A stretch of DNA of 64,000 nucleotides from Mytilus californianus (lineage: Eukaryota), in NCBI RefSeq assembly GCF_021869535.1, contig NW_026262707.1, positions 124,001 to 188,000 on the forward strand. The letters run 5' to 3'. Shown here one piece after another: positions 1-42,900 of the stretch. The position numbers and the translations under genes are program-made. The notes under the pieces were generated by a model. The model saw only the letters and a program-made list of their open reading frames with translations. It had not been told where the DNA came from and made no database searches. How positions within the stretch are numbered: position 1 is the stretch's first letter; every line of letters starts with the position of its first letter.

Positions 1-114
1 TGTGAACATTGTGCTTATTAGATTTCATTTTTGTATATTTTCAGTTTTTTACCCTCTCTGGAGGTCTGCAATAAAAGATAGTAACTCAGGTTTCAGCGTA
101 TCTTTGACATTACA
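1..114 (+). repeat. BEL-A 5' LTR, 3' part
   Basis: Direct repeat of 6842-6955; contains AATAAA at 70-75; ends TTACA. Confidence 0.95.
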
Positions 115-145
115 GTAAAAAACCTTGGTATCGGGAAGAATAAAC

Positions 146-3100
146 ATGGACTCAGAAAGAACTTTGCGTGAGGCGTATAGACTTACTCCAGAAGGACAAT
201 TGGTGTTTGAGGAGAGTGTAAGACAGTTTACTTCAAAACTACGAATTCAACACAGATATATAGACATGATTATGGGAGATATACATGAGCACACCCAGAT
301 GACTAAAACATTAGCTTGTACTTACAAGCAAGAACTAATGAAACATTTAAAGGAATATGAAGAAATTTCTCGCAAATATGACGACTATTTGGTTTCTCAA
401 CGGTGTGACGAAAGTTCTCGTGAGAGAGCTTCACATAGTATGATTGCTAGTTCGATACAACAGAAAGCCTCTATAGTAATAGATAATCTGGAAACAATGT
501 TGCAAGCCTTTGATATGGAAGAGCTACATAAAGTTAAAACTGAACAATTATCAGAAATCATTCAACCACCGGACGCTTTTAGAGAACCGTCAGATATTGG
601 TGTCGATAGAAAATCTAGATGTTCAAGAGGAAGTTCTTATCTTTCTCGGCAAAGAGCCAAAGTTGAAGCCGCAAAAACCAGAGCAAAATTTGCACAAGAA
701 GAAGTTGAACTTATGCGTAAACAAACAGCCATACAAGCAGACATGAAACTTTTAAGTGTGAAACGTGATATAGAGGAAGCTGAATGTGAACTCAGAGTCT
801 TGAATGAGAATTTTGATGACGATTGTGCTATTTCAGAACCAAATAAAGAAGACATCCAAAGACGTAATGCAGAATTCATACTAAAACAAACTGATCAAAA
901 TGACAATACGCCTTTAACTCAAAATTTAAATGTTGATGCACCTACGTTTATACCAGCAGTAGTAAGTCAAATCCCTACTGCCACGTTTACTCAGACAGAC
1001 GCATGTAGGGAGTTTACTCAATTCATTGTTAAAAAAAGACTTGTTATTATCAAGGCTCTGTAAATATGATGACACGCCTGGATATTTCTTAGCTTGGAAA
1101 GCTAGTTTTACAAATGTAATGCGTGAATTAAACGTTACTCCGTCTGAAGAAATAGACTTATTGGTTAAATGGTTGGGACCCGAAAGTTGCAAACAAGCAT
1201 CGAGCATTCGAGCAGCTAATGCAGGAAACCCATCTCAAGGTGTAGCCAGGATTTGGGCTAGACTTCAAGACAGATTTGGAAGTCCAGAAATTGTAGAAAG
1301 TGCTTTGCGTAAGAAACTCAATAACTTTGCCAAAATAAGTAATAAAGACAACAAACGTTTATTTGAGCTTTTTGATATAGTTTCAGAAATAGAAGCAGTT
1401 AAAGAGAATGACATGTATAGAAGTATTTTTAGTGTTTATGACTCATCGGCTGGCGTAAATATTATTATAGCAAAACTTCCATATAATATCCAAGAAAAGT
1501 GGACATCAGAGGCCACCAGATATAAGATTCAAAACCACTTGGTATATCCACCATTCACAGTATTCACCAAGTTTTTGCAAAGGATGGCAAAAATGAAAAA
1601 TGACCCCAGTTTTTTCTTCGAGGATTGTCGAGAAATCAAAGTACAGAATACTACTAATGCAACAAACAATCGTTATGGAAACACAAAAAATCAGTTATCT
1701 TGTGCACGTACTGAAACATCAGTGTTGAAACCGTTAGCAGATAAAGTAAAAAGTTCAGACTTGGTATGTCCTGTGCATGGAACAAGTCACTTATTGAATG
1801 ATTGCAGAGGTTTTCGCATGAAACCGATTTCAGAACGAAGGGAGTTCTTAAAAAAGAATGGAATTTGTTTTCGCTGTTGTGGGCCTAAGCGCCATCTAAG
1901 AAGAGACTGCAAAGAGTTCTTGAAATGTTCAGTCTGTCAGAGTCGGGAACACCCTTCTGGTTTACATACCGATATAGAGAGTATTAAAAATAACAACCCC
2001 CCAGAATCTCACGAGGGGGAGAATGAATCAGGAGAAGTTAAGACAGCATGCACACAAATATGTGGTCAAGTAACTGGCACAAGTAAGTCATGTTCAAAAC
2101 TAATGCTAGTAAAAGTGTATCCAAAAGGAAAACCCGAACAATCACGCATGATGTATTCTTTAATAGATGACCAAAGTAACAGGTCATTGGCCACTTCCAA
2201 CTTCTTTTATTTGTTTTGTGATAATGGACCTGAAACTGAATATGTTTTGTCGTCTTGTGCAGGAAAATTCACAACATCTGGACGTTTAGCTAGGGAATAC
2301 GTGGTAGAAACTTTAGATGGGTCTTGTGTGTTTGATTTACCAACTATCATCGAATGTAATGATATTCCGAACAATAGACAGGAAATAGCGTCACCTAATG
2401 TGGCTATTCAGTATCCTCATCTTGTAGACATTGCTCCTTACATTCCTGAAATCGATGAGCATGCACAGATTGATCTTTTGATAGGAAGAGATTTGATATC
2501 AGTACACCATGTACTCGATCAGCGTCTTGGCAAAGGTAACCTCCCATATGCACAGAAGCTGCCTTTAGGGTGGGCAATAATTGGTGAAGTGTGTCTCGGG
2601 AAAACTCATCCGCCTGGCATTCTAGATTGCGTAAATGTGAACAAGACGACCATTTTGAGTAATGGCCGTGCTACTTTTCTTAAACCTTGTCAAAATGAAT
2701 TACTAATAGATACGAATGTTTTCCGTACAACTGACAAAGATGAAAAAATTGGATCATCAATCGAAGACGATACATTCCTGAGGATCATGAATTCAGGTTT
2801 TGTTAAAGATTCAGATGGTTGTTGGGTTGCTCCATTGCCCTTCCGTGAGCATCGGCCAATATTAGAAAACAACAAACAATTAGCTTTAAAGAGAGCAAAA
2901 TCTTTCGATTACAGCTTGTAAATTAATTCTACAAAACGAGAACATGTCATACAATTCATGCAGAAAATCATCGAAAATGGTCATGCTGAAATAGCGCCAC
3001 CATTGGCTATATCGTCTGAATGTTGGTACTTACCTATGTTTGGGATATATCACCCCACAAAACCTGACAGTATCAGAGTTGTATTCGATGCATCCGCAGT

Positions 3101-6093
3101 GTGTAATGGTCATTCATTAAATAACATTCTGTTAAAGGGACCAGACCTCACGAACAGCCTGTTAGGGATTTTGCTTCGTTTTCGAAAAGAGGCTATAGCG
3201 GTAACTGCTGACGTCGAACAGATGTTCTATAATTTCAAAGTCAGTGAAGAGCATCGTAATTACCTTCGTTTTATTTGGCATACTGAAAATGACATTGAAA
3301 AACCATTGATTGATTACCGTATGACTGTTCACGTATTTGGTAACAGCCCCTCGCCGTCAGTGGCAACTTATAGACTTAGGAAATCTGCTGAAACTGCTGA
3401 TCAAGATGTGAAGGAGTTTGTAGATCGCAACTTTTACGTGGACGATGGTCTATTGTCGTGTCAAAATGTTGAGACAGCTGTTGATTTAGTTAAGAGAACA
3501 CAAAACGCATTGTTAAGGGGTGGTAATCTTAGGTTACATAAAATAGCCTCAAATAGCAAATATTTGTCAAGTCAGTTTCCCGTTGATGATCTGGCTAAAA
3601 ATCTCAAAGATCTGAAATTTGAAAATGACTGTTTACCTTTGCAAAGAAGCCTAGGTATGGCTTGGGATATTAACACTGACTGTTTTACCTTTCAAGTAGC
3701 ACATGACATCAAGCCATTTAGCAAGCGTGGCGTATTATCAACGATCAACTCTCTTTTTGATCCGATTGGCTTTACAGCCCGTGTCTCAGTTCGTGGTAAA
3801 CTTCTCTTACGTGATATGATGACTTCACTAGGACACACTGAATGGGATGACCCATTACCTGATACTTACCTACATCTATGGAAACAGTGGATTAATACGT
3901 TACCTGATCTTGGGCAATGATTTATTCCGCGTATGTATAGTGACATCTTCTATGCAGAAGCTTCGAACAAAGAAGTTCATATCTTTTGTGATGCTTCAAA
4001 AGAGGCAATAGGTGCGGTGGCTTATTTGAGATTAATTGACTCACACCATGTAACAGTTAGTTTTTTATTGGGAAAGGCGAAGGTTGCGCCTTCACATGGG
4101 AATACTATTCCTCGATTAGAACTGTGCGCCTCTGTGTTTGCGGCAGAATTATCTGATCTTGTCAACGAGCATTTAGGTATAGATCAAAGTGAAATGTACT
4201 TTTACTCAGACAGCAAAATAGTGTTGGGTTACTTGACAAATGAGTCAAAGAGGTTTCATGTATACGTTGGAAACCGAGTGCGACGAATTCGAGTCTCTAG
4301 TGATCCAAAAAGATGGAGACATGTTTCAACCGAAAATAATCCGGCAGATATCGCAACACGAGGAATTAACCCTGCAGAGTTATCGAATAGTATATGGATG
4401 AAGGGACCAGTATTTCTTTATAACGTGTCCCTTGGAAATTTAGATAATGGTCCACATCAGTTGGTTGATGCTGATAGTGACAAGGAGATTCGCCCAGATG
4501 TGCAAGTAGCTAAAACACAAACTGTAGATCGAAATAATCTACATAAATTAGGAACACATAGATTCTCAACATTTTCAGAATGGAGAACTTTAGTCAGAGC
4601 AATTTCCTTATTGAAACAACTTGTTAGAAATCTGGCACATCATAACGATAAACCTGAACATTTAGATGCATACAAACAACCAGATGCTTTGAAACGAGCC
4701 CAACAATTCATAATTCGTGAGGTTCAAATGGAAAATTATAGAAACGAAATAGACAATATCAGACAGGGAACATCGTTGCATAACAACAGTTCTCTCTCGC
4801 AACTATCGCCCATACTTGATGTTGATGACACCTTAAGAGTTGGTGGTCGCTTGCGAAATTACAAAGATTGTGCAGATCTTTCAAAACATCCTATTATCTT
4901 ACCAAAACACCACCATATATCATTACTTATTGTTCGACACTTCCATGAAAAAGTGGCTCATCAAGGCAGAAGCCTCACATATGGTGCTATCCGTACAGCT
5001 GGTGTTTGGATTTTAGGCAGTCGTCGTTTAGTTTCTTCAGTGCTTCATAAATGTGTGATATGTCGTAAGCTTCGTGGTTGTTTCGGTTGGCAGCAAATGG
5101 CAGATTTGCCTGAGGACAGATTAAAACCATCACCGCCATTTACATTCGTCGGTGTTGGACACTTTTGGCCCATGGCCCATAGCATATAGACGCACTCGTG
5201 TCATACCAGCTAATCAGAAAAGATGGGCACTTATGTTCACATGCCTCGTCAGCAGAGCAATTCATATAGAGGTCATAGAGGAGCTCAGCAGTGCTTCATG
5301 TATAAATGCGTTGCGTCGTTTCATTGCCTTAAGGGGTGAAGTTAAGCAGTTCCGTTCTGATAGGGGAACAAACTTTGTTGGCAGTTCAAAAGAGCTAAAT
5401 ATGATCACTGAATTGGTTGAAAAAGACTCTGTGAGAAGTTTTCTCTCAAACAACGACGTCTTGTGGCTTTTTAATCCTCCACACGCCTCCCACATGGAAG
5501 GAGTGTGGGAAAGGATGATTGGTGTTTCACGAAAGATTTTAGATTCTATGTTACTACGAGAAGGTTCAAAAACTCTTACTCATGAAGTACTTACTACCCT
5601 GTTATCGGAGGTAACAGCAATTGTAAATGCGAGACCCTTGGTTCCGGTGTCAGCTGACCCAGAATCACCATGTGTACTTTGTCCAGCAATGCTTCTCACA
5701 CATAAAATAAATCAGGACAATGTATCGTTTCCAACATTCGGAAATAAAGACATGTTGAAATCTCTATGGAAGCACACTCAGGTTCTAGCAGAAGAGTTTT
5801 GGAACCGCTGGCGTAACGAATATTTAAACCGTCTACAAACTCGACAAAAATGGACCCGTGAATACAGTAATATGAAGGAAGGCGATTTAGTACTCTTAAG
5901 AGACCGTGAATGTGCTCGCAACTATTGGCCAGTCGCAATTGTTGAAAAGACATTCTCTAGTTTTGATCAGAAAGTCAGAAAGGTTCAAATTCGTGTTGTG
6001 CGTGATGGGAAAGCAGTTAGTTATGTTAGACCAATCAACGAACTAGTAATGTTGGTAGAGCATGTGGAACTAAAACAAAGTGAAACAGATTAA
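146..6093 (+). pseudogene. BEL-A gag-pol polyprotein, disrupted
   Basis: Five ORF-track segments join into one polyprotein: Cys/His gag knuckles (CFRCCGPKRH), protease-like LIDDQS, RT YLPMFG/FYVDD, RNase H IFCDAS, integrase HHCC region and D-D-E (GVDTFGPW, SDRGTNF, GVWERMI). Lesions: +1 frameshift in an A7 run (~1031-1037), in-frame TAA 2919-2921, TGA 3918-3920, +1 frameshift ~5157. Confidence 0.93.
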
Positions 6094-6235
6094 TGATTAT
6101 AATTTTAACTCGTTGAACCTTCGGATAGTCAGAACATTTTATTACAGTTATTACATTTTGCATTGATAATTTGTTCATGTTATTTTCAAATTTGTTTATG
6201 AATTGGTGATTTTAGATTTGAAATCAGAGGGGGAG

Positions 6236-6955
6236 TGTTATGTCACACTCCGGAAATTACGGATCTGTCCGTCATTATGTCGAATTTTATTTTTGATGTC
6301 TGCCACACGGCAAAGATAAACAAACTTTTCTTTGGTATTCAACCCTCCACAGGGTGAGTTTTTGTTATACTGTAGTTTATAACCTTCATTTGTATGCCCG
6401 ATATACGTATTTAAAGTCTAAGGTCAGTCCTTTTGAATTTAATTGTGATTTCAAACGATTCTCAGGAGTCATATCTCATGTCACACTTATTTTGTATTTT
6501 ACATGTTAAATTAAGCTTTCCGATGTTTATATGATGGTTATTTTTATTCCTGCTTTTATTATACACCAGTCCTAGTCAATTTAAGCTTCTTAATTCTCGA
6601 TTTTTGATATTACTCCGTCAGTTTGTCAAAATATTTTTTGTATGGAACGCCAATAGAGCCATATATTTCGGCGTACGTTTTTTCTTAAAACAGTATGTGT
6701 ATAGAACGCTTTTCGTGTTATAATTTTGTTATCTAAGATGTAATTCTATGGCACTTTTTGATCATTTTTTGGTTGTTTCATAAGATAGACATATTTTTCA
6801 ATGTATGGAGAACATTGTTGATATTAATTGTACCATTATTTTGTGAACATTGTGCTTATTAGATTTCATTTTTGTATATTTTCAGTTTTTTACCCTCTCT
6901 GGAGGTCTGCAATAAAAGATAGTAACTCAGGTTTTAGCGTATCTTTGATATTACA
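6236..6955 (+). repeat. BEL-A 3' LTR (720 bp)
   Basis: TGT...ACA termini, follows the PPT, AATAAA at 6911-6916; followed by GATAG (candidate TSD, 5' copy outside window). Confidence 0.94.
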
Positions 6956-27869: not shown

Positions 27870-28562
27870 TGTAATGCCAAGAATATCATTAGAGTTATCC
27901 CTCTTTATACGCAACCTGCATTTTTGATAATTGTGGTTAATCCGACTTGTTTTTGTTTTACACATTGTTTTTACATTTCCTGCAGCATGGCTTGATAAAT
28001 TTTTGAACATAATTACGAAGAACATTATCATTCTCCTTGTCCCTTGGTGAATTACGATGTAAGTAATAATGCCATTATGTACTATATATTCTAGTTAAAG
28101 CTATTATTATGTTATTTGCGGTATAAGTCATGAGAAAGCATATATCCAAACAGCTTACATTCTACGAACGATGGCATTTGTGTAAATAATCATGTGTGAA
28201 CTTTGTAATATTTTATTTGTATGCGAAAACAGTATTATTTGGTATATTTCTAAGTCATATGTAATTTTTATGAAGACAGCAATTTTTGTACAACTCTAGT
28301 CAAGTCAGTTCAGTACATTCTCCCCCTTTTTTGTCAATTGTGTTTTTCATTGATTTGAGTGTTTTCAATCATAGATTTTTTGTATTTTATTACTACAGTT
28401 GGTAGTTAACAATGTTAGTTATTAGTTTTTATTTTTTATATTGTAGCTTTTCACCAAATGTATGTGGCTTCATGATCTGTCAGCTCCTGACGCATTGAAT
28501 GTTTAATTGAATAAAATGATCTACATATATATGGTTTAACTCTCTGCGCCCAAGGCAGAACA
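27870..28562 (+). repeat. BEL-B 5' LTR
   Basis: TGTAATGCC...GCAGAACA; no difference from the 3' LTR seen on manual comparison. Confidence 0.97.
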
Positions 28563-28580
28563 GTGAAAAGATCCATCAGC

Positions 28581-39900: not shown

Positions 39901-42900
39901 GAAAATTACAGCCTTTGGACTAATAAAAATATACACAGACTGATACACTCTTTTCGATGTGTCTTCAGATCTTGAGCTTGTTTTTAATATGTAAATATAT
40001 ATAGGAAGATGTGGTGTGAGTGCCAATTAGACAACTCTCCATCCAAATAACAATTTATAAAAGTAAACCATTATAGGTCAATGTACGGCCTTCAACACGG
40101 AGCCTTGGCTCACACCGAACAACAAGCTATAAAGGGCCCCAAAATTACTAGTGTAAAACCATTCAAACGTGAAAACCAACGGTCTAATCTTTATAAAAAA
40201 CGAGAAACAAGTATAAATTACATAAACAAACAACAACTACTGTACTTCAGATTCCTGACTTAGGACAGGTGCAAACATTTGCAGCGGGAAATCCAGTTAT
40301 GATGAGTTACGGATCAGCTTTAAGTTTCATGCTGCTCTGCTTATTTTTGCTGAAATTACAGACTCTAACTGAACTTGAAATAATCTGAAATAAACAGTTG
40401 AATGCTGGACCGTGCATGTTTCTGTCCCCACTTGTAATTGATATTGCAGGTTTTCACTTTATTTGAAAAGGGACCGTTTATGTCGTTCTGACACATCTTG
40501 ATTATACATGTACCCCCAAGTCCTATAAGTAATAGTTTCAATACTAGGATTCACTTTTACCTTTTTTGTCTTCAAAAAGATTCCTTTTAACTTGCAATCT
40601 TCTCTTCCTAATGGTTGTTCTACATGTACTTGCTGTACAACTTGACCTGTCATCATTGTCACACACAGCAGATTTCTTATCTGTAATAAGATTCACATTT
40701 TGATTATTGTATAGTGAAAAATTCAAATATTTGTCAACCCAATGCATGCAATAAGCCTTCCAAATAGATAACATCGTAGATCATGTACAATGTAGATAGG
40801 GAGCTACCATGGCCATTTAAACTGACAACTTTCATCATTTTCAGTTACATGTACATGTAGTTGTGAAGTTTGTTCACCAATGGATTCATAAATATAAAGG
40901 TATGAAATGAAATAAGAAATAAACTAACAAAGCCATAGCAAGAAAAAAAATAATCTACACTTTGCCGAGCAATTTATTTTATGGTAAAAATGGTATTTCA
41001 TAAATGCCAGTTTTCATGTAACTGATTGAATTTAAGTTTTTATAATAATTATCATACCTTTAATATATGAGTTGTATAGAGTTTTAACTTTGTCATCTTC
41101 CAAATGCTTATATCCTGAAAGATAAAACCTTGAACTTAAAAACTTCATCCATCAATCTTCAACTAATTGTAAAATAAATAGTTACAAATGTTTATAAATA
41201 TATCTATACATAGATAAGTTAGACTTGTTAATATATTTATAGGTATTGTATGTGTAATTGGAATACTAAAAATAATATGCCAAGGCCAGATAAAAATATA
41301 TGTGTGGTTACAGTTAAATACTTTTAAAAAATAGGTTCGGTAGGTGGGCAATTTCATTTTTTTTTTTCTAAATTTTTAAAATGGATTGTCAAAATCAATA
41401 AAAAAAATCGTGTGTTTACCAAAATTGATTCCGGTATTATACACGCCTCTTCAGGAAGTTCATCATTTTTCAAGTGTTACTGTGAAAAATAAATAGCGTT
41501 GCGTTTCTAGTTAATTTTGTTGCATTCTGTTATGAATTGTTGCATTTCAGAATGGATATTTTTTTATGAAATTCAGATGACAGGAATCTATGAATTTAAT
41601 TATTTAAAATTCACAATCCTCAAAATTTGATCAATTACTTTTTTTTCAGAAATGACAAAAAAAAAGTTCTAGGGTTGGGGGGTTTAAACCATGGTCAGTC
41701 TGGTAACTGGAACAATAAATATATTTTTTATTTAGCCCAATCGTGTAAAAAATAAATTTCTATACATGCCATTTCTATGCATTTTTCTTAACAATCAACA
41801 GAAATCTCATTTTAAAACAAAAGACTAACTTGTTGAAAGTTGTTTATCCATTACTTTTCTTGCAGCAAGTTTCTTCTCGCCAGTGTGTGCAGTATGGTTT
41901 GATAACTGGTGGTCTGTAAATAAGGATAAAGGAAAATAAAATTAGAATACAGTTTATTTACTTTTATATATTACTTTTCAGGCACAAAGACTACTGTTGA
42001 AAAGTTGTTGGTAATATGCAAAAGTAAAGATAAATGTTGAGGACCTCCAGACATTCTTCAAGGACCACAAGGGGGAAATGAGAATTCTTTGACAACAGGC
42101 TTTCATTCCAAAAAAAAAACTGGTATTTGTAAAGTTCGACTGGTTTACCAAAAAAAATGATAAGTATTAAAAATGGTGTAGAATTATTTTGTTAAGTTTT
42201 CAGTTTATGAGATGATGTGAATTGCAGCAATGGAAAATCACTCTTTCTTTTGTAGAATTTAACAAAGGTTCTTAATTTGAAGGTTTTTCATGTACCCACT
42301 TCATGAAATCACACATTTTTATGTCATACCTTAGATCAAATTGTTTTCAATGGAAAAAAGAAAATGGACATAATTATAAAAAACACAATAAGAAAAAGGG
42401 TGATCAATCATTCCAATATAATGTATAATACTGTTAAACAATTTTTGTAATAGATTTAAACCTTTACCATGGTCTCCAGAAAGGGAAACAATCTGTTTAG
42501 CTGGAATGGTCATTGGATCATCATCTGAAAGAAGAAAAATAAAAATATGGCTGAATTATTTGTCTTTTAAGGTTTTGCATTTTAGAAATATTCAAATTGG
42601 AGAAATCATGAACATAAATCACATTCACTTTGGACACTTTAAGACATTGAAATATAAGACAAATTCGTCAGTTTTGTGAATTGATAGTTTTGACCCTTAT
42701 AGTTTACTAGGTAGCTCATTTGGAAGAGCACCTCAACCCAGTTTGAGGAGGTTCCAGGTTCAAATCCTGGCCTAGTACTTATGTTGGCTTCAGTTTAGTG
42801 TAGTTTTTTTACGCCCGATTACGGGACGTTAATGGTATACTTACTGTTGACCGTCCATTGTCAACATGATGGACATTATTTCAAAAACACTTTAACTAAT

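Follow-up and report, generated by a model that had tools for sequence, protein, structure and literature searches.

Complementarity between the LTR and the adjoining leader suggests self-priming in BEL/Pao retrotransposons of Mytilus californianus and their relatives

The BEL-A element

The DNA analysed here, a 64-kb window of the 1.65-Gb genome of Mytilus californianus, opens with one LTR retrotransposon, BEL-A, whose copy occupies positions 1-6955; all of the features described below lie on the forward strand. The gag-pol region (146-6093, with its ATG at 146) holds five open frames in this copy, which include the Pfam domains Peptidase_A17 of Pao, RVT_1 (reverse transcriptase), rve (integrase) and DUF5641, and BEL-A is therefore a BEL/Pao element. 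In a protein search with one full polyprotein, the closest proteins all carried PF05380 and PF18701. A polyprotein of the Ty3/gypsy type, usually with a chromodomain integrase, was not found in BEL-A. With the BEL/Pao elements already described (Belpaoviridae, Semotivirus) it shares a Pao aspartic peptidase, the gene order with reverse transcriptase, RNase H and integrase in succession, a DUF5641 tail, LTRs of the form TGT...ACA, target-site duplications of 5 bp and a polypurine tract adjoining the 3' LTR. The family, which comprises about six full copies that are 96-99% identical together with solo LTRs, is young and low in copy number.

The window starts within the 5' LTR of BEL-A, which corrects an earlier description, and contains the last 114 nt of that LTR (1-114, ending ...ATTACA), as seen by alignment to the 3' LTR and to other copies. 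The LTR reaches back beyond the start of the window (L001:927-1614). The full LTR, TGTTATG...ATTACA, measures about 690-736 bp in the same alignments; the 5' LTR of the window copy has lost the first 47 nt at its 5' end, and no target-site duplication was seen for this copy. The LTR ends at the same base, position 114, in all copies, and the other copies have target-site duplications of 5 bp. At the far end of the element the polypurine tract AGAGGGGGAG (6226-6235) adjoins a 3' LTR of 720 bp (6236-6955), also TGTTATG...ATTACA. A 16-bp tandem duplication (TGTGAACATTGTTGAT) is present in the 5' LTR of the window copy at L001:1484-1499, just upstream of window position 1; it is absent from the 3' LTR of the same copy and present in the other BEL-A 5' LTRs.

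The initial annotation drew attention to a complementarity across the end of this LTR, and its coordinates were confirmed. Bases 44-52, GTTTTTTAC, are the exact reverse complement of bases 115-123, GTAAAAAAC, of which 115 is the first internal base, and the fold-back would enclose a loop of 62 nt (53-114). The 3' end of the candidate self-primer, C52, pairs with G115, the first base of the candidate primer-binding site (PBS). The helix has no extension at either end (43/124 is a-c and 53/114 is c-a), and the PBS is identical in all BEL-A copies with a readable 5' junction. Across the 64 kb of the window the 9-mer is confined to 44-52 and the 3' LTR copy of the site (6885-6893), with its antisense form at 115-123. 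All nine bases match in BEL-A, but the conserved helix is of only 8 bp, with its LTR strand at 45-52; the ninth pair is limited to BEL-A and a few other elements. The initiator-like motif TCAGTT (41-46) was also correctly placed upstream of the polyadenylation signal AATAAA (70-75). The latter lies 18 nt past the site, which is thereby located either within R or on the U3/R border.

The match in BEL-A alone is suggestive and not significant, because an exact complement of 9 nt also arose in 0.5% of dinucleotide shuffles restricted to the final 114 nt of the LTR, in 1.4% for the last 260 nt and in 4% for the whole LTR; the sequence is A/T-rich. An 8-mer complement was found in 3-22% of shuffled LTR stretches. 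Considered on its own, then, BEL-A is compatible with chance complementarity between two low-complexity A/T runs, an explanation that we regard as next to impossible once other elements are included.

Pairing between LTR and leader in related elements

A search of the host genome for reverse transcriptases revealed many young BEL/Pao families, and 20 loci of 10 kb were compared. Identity within the LTR pairs of these loci is 95-100%, and target-site duplications fixed the LTR ends; relatives in other animals were collected by a search with one full polyprotein. The comparison set (n = 18) comprises nine copies from seven M. californianus families, BEL-B of the window included, and nine others: the oysters Saccostrea, C. 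virginica and Ostrea, the scallop Pecten, the limpet Patella, the abalone Haliotis, the priapulid Priapulus, the frog Aquarana and the read-assembly contig L048 (Logan). Natural copies were used throughout, and neither a consensus nor a repaired frame was made. In both Logan contigs, L048 and L049, the assembly collapses or breaks at the repeat, and they yielded no ends of transcripts; in the Pinctada locus L042 an LTR pair was looked for and none was found.

Complementarity between the LTR and the bases next to it was present in all 18 elements, at the homologous site in the LTR. Across helix positions 1-8, 143 of the 144 cells hold a pair (a Watson-Crick pair in 141 and G.U in two), and the pair types switch in a compensatory manner at positions 3, 5, 6, 7 and 8. 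From position 9 pairing is at the background level, with positions 9, 10 and 11 paired in 8, 4 and 6 of the 18 elements, respectively. The helix has 8 bp at offset 0 in 16 of the 18; in the frog it has 7 bp at offset 0, and in Priapulus it has 8 bp at an offset that is ambiguous by 1-3 nt. It closes loops of 39-185 nt and is short and A/U-rich (8 bp compared with 11 in Tf1); eight A/U-rich pairs make a weak helix.

The same set disposes of chance as an explanation. Ten different PBS 8-mers occur among the 18 elements, each with a matching LTR site at the homologous place. The exact complement of an element's own 8-mer was present in 15 of 17 LTR tails, with one G.U pair in the other two, whereas the complement of a different element's 8-mer was found in 12 of 252 comparisons. 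When the PBSs were permuted among the elements, none of 100,000 permutations reached the observed pairing. Chance complementarity is refuted by these results.

Within the window, BEL-B has its LTR site CTTTTCAC at 28448-28455 in the 5' LTR, preceded by tattgtAG and followed by C, and its PBS GTGAAAAG at 28564-28571, beginning at the first base past the LTR end (28563); the comparison drew on copy L033, which has both LTRs. Its PBS differs from that of BEL-A at two positions, and each difference is compensated in the BEL-B LTR site. Among the other mussel families, the LTR site and PBS are TTTTTTAC and GTAAAAAA in family G, TTTTTCAC and GTGAAAAA in family C, CTTTTTAC and GTAAAAAG in family E, TATTTTAC and GTAAAATA in family F, and CAGTTTAC and GTAAATTG in family D, in which the helix includes one G.U pair and has a perfect 11-bp version in one copy. 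Saccostrea has the same pair as family G (TTTTTTAC and GTAAAAAA), and C. virginica and Ostrea have the same pair as family F (TATTTTAC and GTAAAATA). In Pecten the site ACTTTTAC faces GTAAAAGT, in Patella AGTCTTTTTAC faces GTAAAAAGACT, in Haliotis CCTTTTAC faces GTAAAAGG, and in Logan contig L048 TTTCTCAC faces GTGAGAAA. Priapulus, an old copy whose LTR end is ambiguous by 1-3 nt, has TCTTTTAC and GTAAAAGA, and the bullfrog has the 7-bp combination of GTTTTAC with GTAAAAC.

The surroundings of the LTR site are conserved as well. It is preceded by a T-rich tract and YAG, ends in AC and is followed by C, with AATAAA farther downstream; the order of site, AATAAA and LTR end is kept in the relatives. 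The core of the PBS, GTAAAA or GTGAAA, is nearly invariant from molluscs to frog, which is more than self-priming alone requires.

Several individual copies deserve description. The family-D copy with the perfect 11-bp helix (L030, G000:C165:38595518-38605517) has an internal deletion of about 200 nt in both LTRs that ends exactly at the primer site, and its site complements the PBS perfectly over 11 nt (TGTCAATTTAC), compared with 8-9 bp and one G.U pair in its relatives. This match may record a transfer of information between PBS and site, or it may be the ancestral state. In family D (L027-L037) and in L035, L047 and L044 the LTRs have the ends TAT...ATA or ...TTA in place of the canonical TGT...ACA, and the PBS still starts at the next base. 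Two further candidate pairings were dismissed. A 9-nt complement in family D, ACAAGTTGT with ACAACTTGT, situated upstream of the TATA box and 10 nt into the leader, is absent from sub-family D2 and was attributed to chance. A diverged solo LTR (L016) with the site GTTTCATAC predicts the PBS GTATGAAAC, for which there were six pattern matches against nine for the control, that is, a chance level.

Candidate primers and the structure of the leader

The initial annotation had also reported that BEL-A has no tRNA PBS, and as far as the sequences indicate this can be extended: neither BEL-A nor its 17 relatives have a conserved PBS of the tRNA type. The triplet TGG, the complement of CCA, is absent from the LTR end in every one of the 18 elements, it does not occur in the 45-nt leader of family C, and the leader of family B is only 18 nt long. 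An 18-nt PBS complementary to the 3' end of tRNA-Arg or tRNA-Gly was not found in BEL-A or in the 17 relatives. The only TGG in the BEL-A leader (126-128) was rejected as a tRNA PBS: it lies 11 nt from the LTR, the tRNA end that it implies is without the universal C61, and it is CGG in another BEL-A copy, so that it is not conserved even in the family.

A host RNA might nevertheless be the primer. A tRNA, a tRNA half or some other RNA with the 3' end ...UUUUAC could prime on the GTAAAA core, with the complementarity to the LTR being secondary. The near-invariance of the GTAAAA/GTGAAA core from molluscs to frog would suit such a primer, and a G at position 3 or 5 could still form a wobble pair with U; BEL/Pao elements are, in addition, described as tRNA-primed (PMC8742986), with tRNA-Tyr in the case of Achilles (PMC4580426). 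A single host RNA would, however, be limited to pairing over about 6 nt. Positions 6-8 of the PBS vary among the families of one genome (AAA, AAG, ATA and TTG) and the LTR of each family matches its own version, which a shared host RNA cannot explain. With no TGG at or near the LTR end, we consider priming by a host RNA very improbable. Internal fragments of tRNAs would be excluded as primers by the same covariation argument.

A search of the host genome with RF00005 listed 63 places; identical tRNA genes form long tandem arrays, one with more than 55 copies at G000:C132:2769899-2849390 (spacing of about 705 or about 2,488 bp) and another with six copies at C88:102855983-102862509 (spacing of 1,291 bp). 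Within the window, ARAGORN identified a tRNA-like gene at 42705-42778 with a 4-base anticodon (ccag) in an 8-nt loop.

In predicted minimum-free-energy folds, R-U5 is fully closed by the helix in 13 of 17 elements, and in BEL-A a small hairpin, CCUC-UCUG-GAGG (53-64), is stacked upon it. A hairpin of this kind (ACC-CUCU..GGAGG, 4-5 bp), directly 3' of the site, is predicted in one sub-clade, in BEL-A, family C, Saccostrea, C. virginica, Ostrea and L048; its place is window positions 53-64 and the corresponding positions in L022, L040, L041, L047 and L048. In the other sub-clade (BEL-B, E, F and Haliotis) ACCAAAUG.../ACCGCAC... stands in place of the hairpin, which is not predicted there.

These folds also accommodate a rival in which the helix is real and serves in the 5' leader as a stem with a regulatory or structural function, the true primer being something else. 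Such a stem might mask the AAUAAA of the 5' R-U5 and so confine use of the signal to the 3' copy, or might act in packaging or dimerisation in the manner of the retroviral U5-leader stems. It would fit the observations that the loop which the helix closes always contains AAUAAA and that a PBS partner is available only at the 5' end. It would fit, too, with the GTRAAA that adjoins the LTR, a possible U1 binding site because it resembles a weak 5' splice site; in HIV-1 a U1 site of this kind suppresses the 5' poly(A) site. A regulatory stem, on the other hand, has no reason to begin at the first base past the LTR, as the helix does in 17 of the 18 elements (Priapulus being ambiguous by 1-3 nt), whereas a primer must do so. 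It also leaves the elements without another primer site, given leaders of down to 18 nt, none of which has a conserved tRNA complement. We judge a stem with no part in priming to be improbable. Concealment of the poly(A) signal and priming are not mutually exclusive, and the former is a possible second role of the stem.

Both partners of the helix lie in sequences that look like splice signals. Positions 30-43 of the window, a pyrimidine tract followed by YAG, resemble a 3' splice site, and the GTRAAA with which the PBS opens (115-120) resembles a weak 5' splice site or a U1 binding site; each is found in all of the relatives. Binding of U1 at GTRAAA could suppress the 5' poly(A) site. As an account of the site and the PBS, a reading in terms of splice signals was set aside: it cannot account for covariation at positions 3 and 5-8.

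The putative transcription start is A43, in the initiator-like TCAGTT; it has indirect support from YAG ahead of the site, from AATAAA behind it and from the helix of Patella. YAG is kept before the site in 14 of the 18 elements (positions 9-10 of the site being G and A) and is unpaired; in Patella an 11-bp helix begins exactly at the A of CAG. If the primer included the AG, plus-strand copying should write CT at PBS positions 9-10; the conserved AG is mostly unpaired and CT occurs at these positions in Patella only. In family D a TATA-like box is located downstream of the site, and for this reason the site could there belong to U3 instead of marking the start of the RNA. RNA-seq data (one raw run and three contig runs, the contigs being of a kind that cannot show ends) gave two reads on BEL-A over L001:1000-2400, none on or near the LTR, and neither joints nor ends.

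Probable self-priming in the BEL/Pao superfamily

The boundary between the LTR and the internal region of an LTR element is set by the point at which minus-strand synthesis starts. The 3' end of the LTR strand of the helix lies opposite the first internal base, and the helix is therefore primer-like. That the LTR-adjacent site is a PBS served by LTR sequence of the same element rather than by a tRNA, as the initial annotation proposed, is strongly supported by the occurrence of the helix in 18 elements, by its compensatory changes and by its sharp boundary at 8 bp. Since the helix abuts the LTR end, no PBS of the tRNA type is available and a shared host RNA cannot explain positions 6-8, the best reading of these sequences is that a wide clade of BEL/Pao elements probably self-primes in the manner of Tf1.

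We infer the transcription start, the cut, the cutting enzyme and the priming itself, and the pathway that we propose for BEL-A is as follows. The transcript would start at or beside the YAG initiator, at about A43. Its first 10 or so nucleotides, (A)GUUUUUUAC, would fold back over R-U5 (62 nt, including the small hairpin and AAUAAA) and pair with GUAAAAAAC, which begins at the first base past the LTR. Cleavage on the 3' side of C52, assumed on the model of RNase H in Tf1, would leave a 3'-OH on C52, and reverse transcriptase would extend this end into U5, which would explain why the LTR ends exactly where the helix starts. Plus-strand strong-stop synthesis would then copy the primer back into the PBS, with the result that the two sites should stay complementary automatically.

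Self-priming is proven for Tf1, whose 11 leading bases pair with the PBS and are separated from base 12 by an RNase H cut (PMC7175516). It has been inferred for Tf2 and Tj1, for the Sushi group, the Tcn1 clade and the copia TAR lineage (PMC7175516, PMC4600332, PMC6317226, PMC6934838). BEL-A resembles the Ty3/gypsy elements Tf1, Tf2 and Tj1 of fission yeasts in having an LTR-adjacent PBS that is complementary to the putative start of its own R and not to a tRNA, and in a predicted fold-back that closes R-U5, with an extra hairpin likewise predicted beside the primer helix (PMC7175516, PMC4600332). Unlike Tf1, the BEL-A clade belongs to BEL/Pao, with the Pao peptidase A17 and DUF5641 and no chromodomain; its helix is of 8 bp and not 11, with a near-fixed UUUUAC/GUAAAA core and a conserved unpaired AG ahead of it, at a putative start and with a putative cut. 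The vertebrate Sushi group, the Tcn1 clade of mosses and fungi and the Ty1/copia TAR lineage (Houba, Osr-1) offer another parallel: there, too, self-priming was predicted from sequence, a tRNA PBS is lacking and complementarity between LTR and PBS is conserved within the lineage (PMC6317226, PMC6934838). Those groups are members of the gypsy and copia superfamilies; self-priming in the BEL-A clade would extend the mechanism to the third LTR superfamily and to protostome animals.

The BEL/Pao superfamily is the least studied of the LTR superfamilies and is officially described as tRNA-primed. The ICTV profile of the Belpaoviridae gives an 18-nt PBS to the 3' end of tRNA-Arg or tRNA-Gly and priming by a host tRNA (PMC8742986), and the fly element Achilles has an 18-nt tRNA-Tyr PBS (PMC4580426); the BEL-A clade differs from both in being without a tRNA PBS. 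The main BEL/Pao survey and the Sinbad paper do not mention a PBS, and in open-access full texts we found no report of self-priming in BEL/Pao, an earlier mention in subscription journals being possible. In retroviruses, U5-leader and U5-IR stems flank the tRNA PBS and help to place the tRNA. The BEL-A clade is like them in that R/U5 pairs near the PBS and unlike them in that the stem occupies the position of the PBS itself.

Priming is a defining step of every LTR element. We lean towards the broader view that self-priming is the ancestral and general means by which a large BEL/Pao clade, still active and distributed across Bilateria (bivalves, gastropods, a priapulid and a frog), starts reverse transcription, with a fixed 8-nt primer of UUUUAC core taken from the first bases of the transcript. 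If this is true, self-priming occurs in all three superfamilies of LTR retrotransposons. The result would agree with the idea that hairpin or self-priming is ancient and tRNA priming came later (PMC3601003), would contradict the family description of the Belpaoviridae, and would make ancestral self-priming of LTR elements testable across the three superfamilies. The pairing of LTR site and PBS would provide a simple sequence test of which BEL/Pao lineages have switched primers, and when. Annotation tools that demand a tRNA PBS would miss or misjudge elements of this clade, which would also be out of reach of host defences in which 3' tRNA fragments target the PBS. The fixed length of 8 bp and the conserved putative cut site, between AC and C, make clear predictions for the reverse transcriptase-RNase H of the BEL-A clade.

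Two observations concern the hosts in which such elements are found. The bullfrog copy (L050; Aquarana catesbeiana, CM090159.1:95477953-95490773) has about 52% protein identity to the mussel elements, LTRs that are 100% identical, a 5-bp target-site duplication and the same layout of site and PBS as in the mussel, and represents recent activity of the clade in a vertebrate. Two full BEL/Pao polyproteins (P0050 and P0051) are also recorded in NCBI as belonging to the metagenome-assembled genome of a bacterium (Sedimenticola sp.), and these are most likely animal host DNA that was binned into a bacterial genome.
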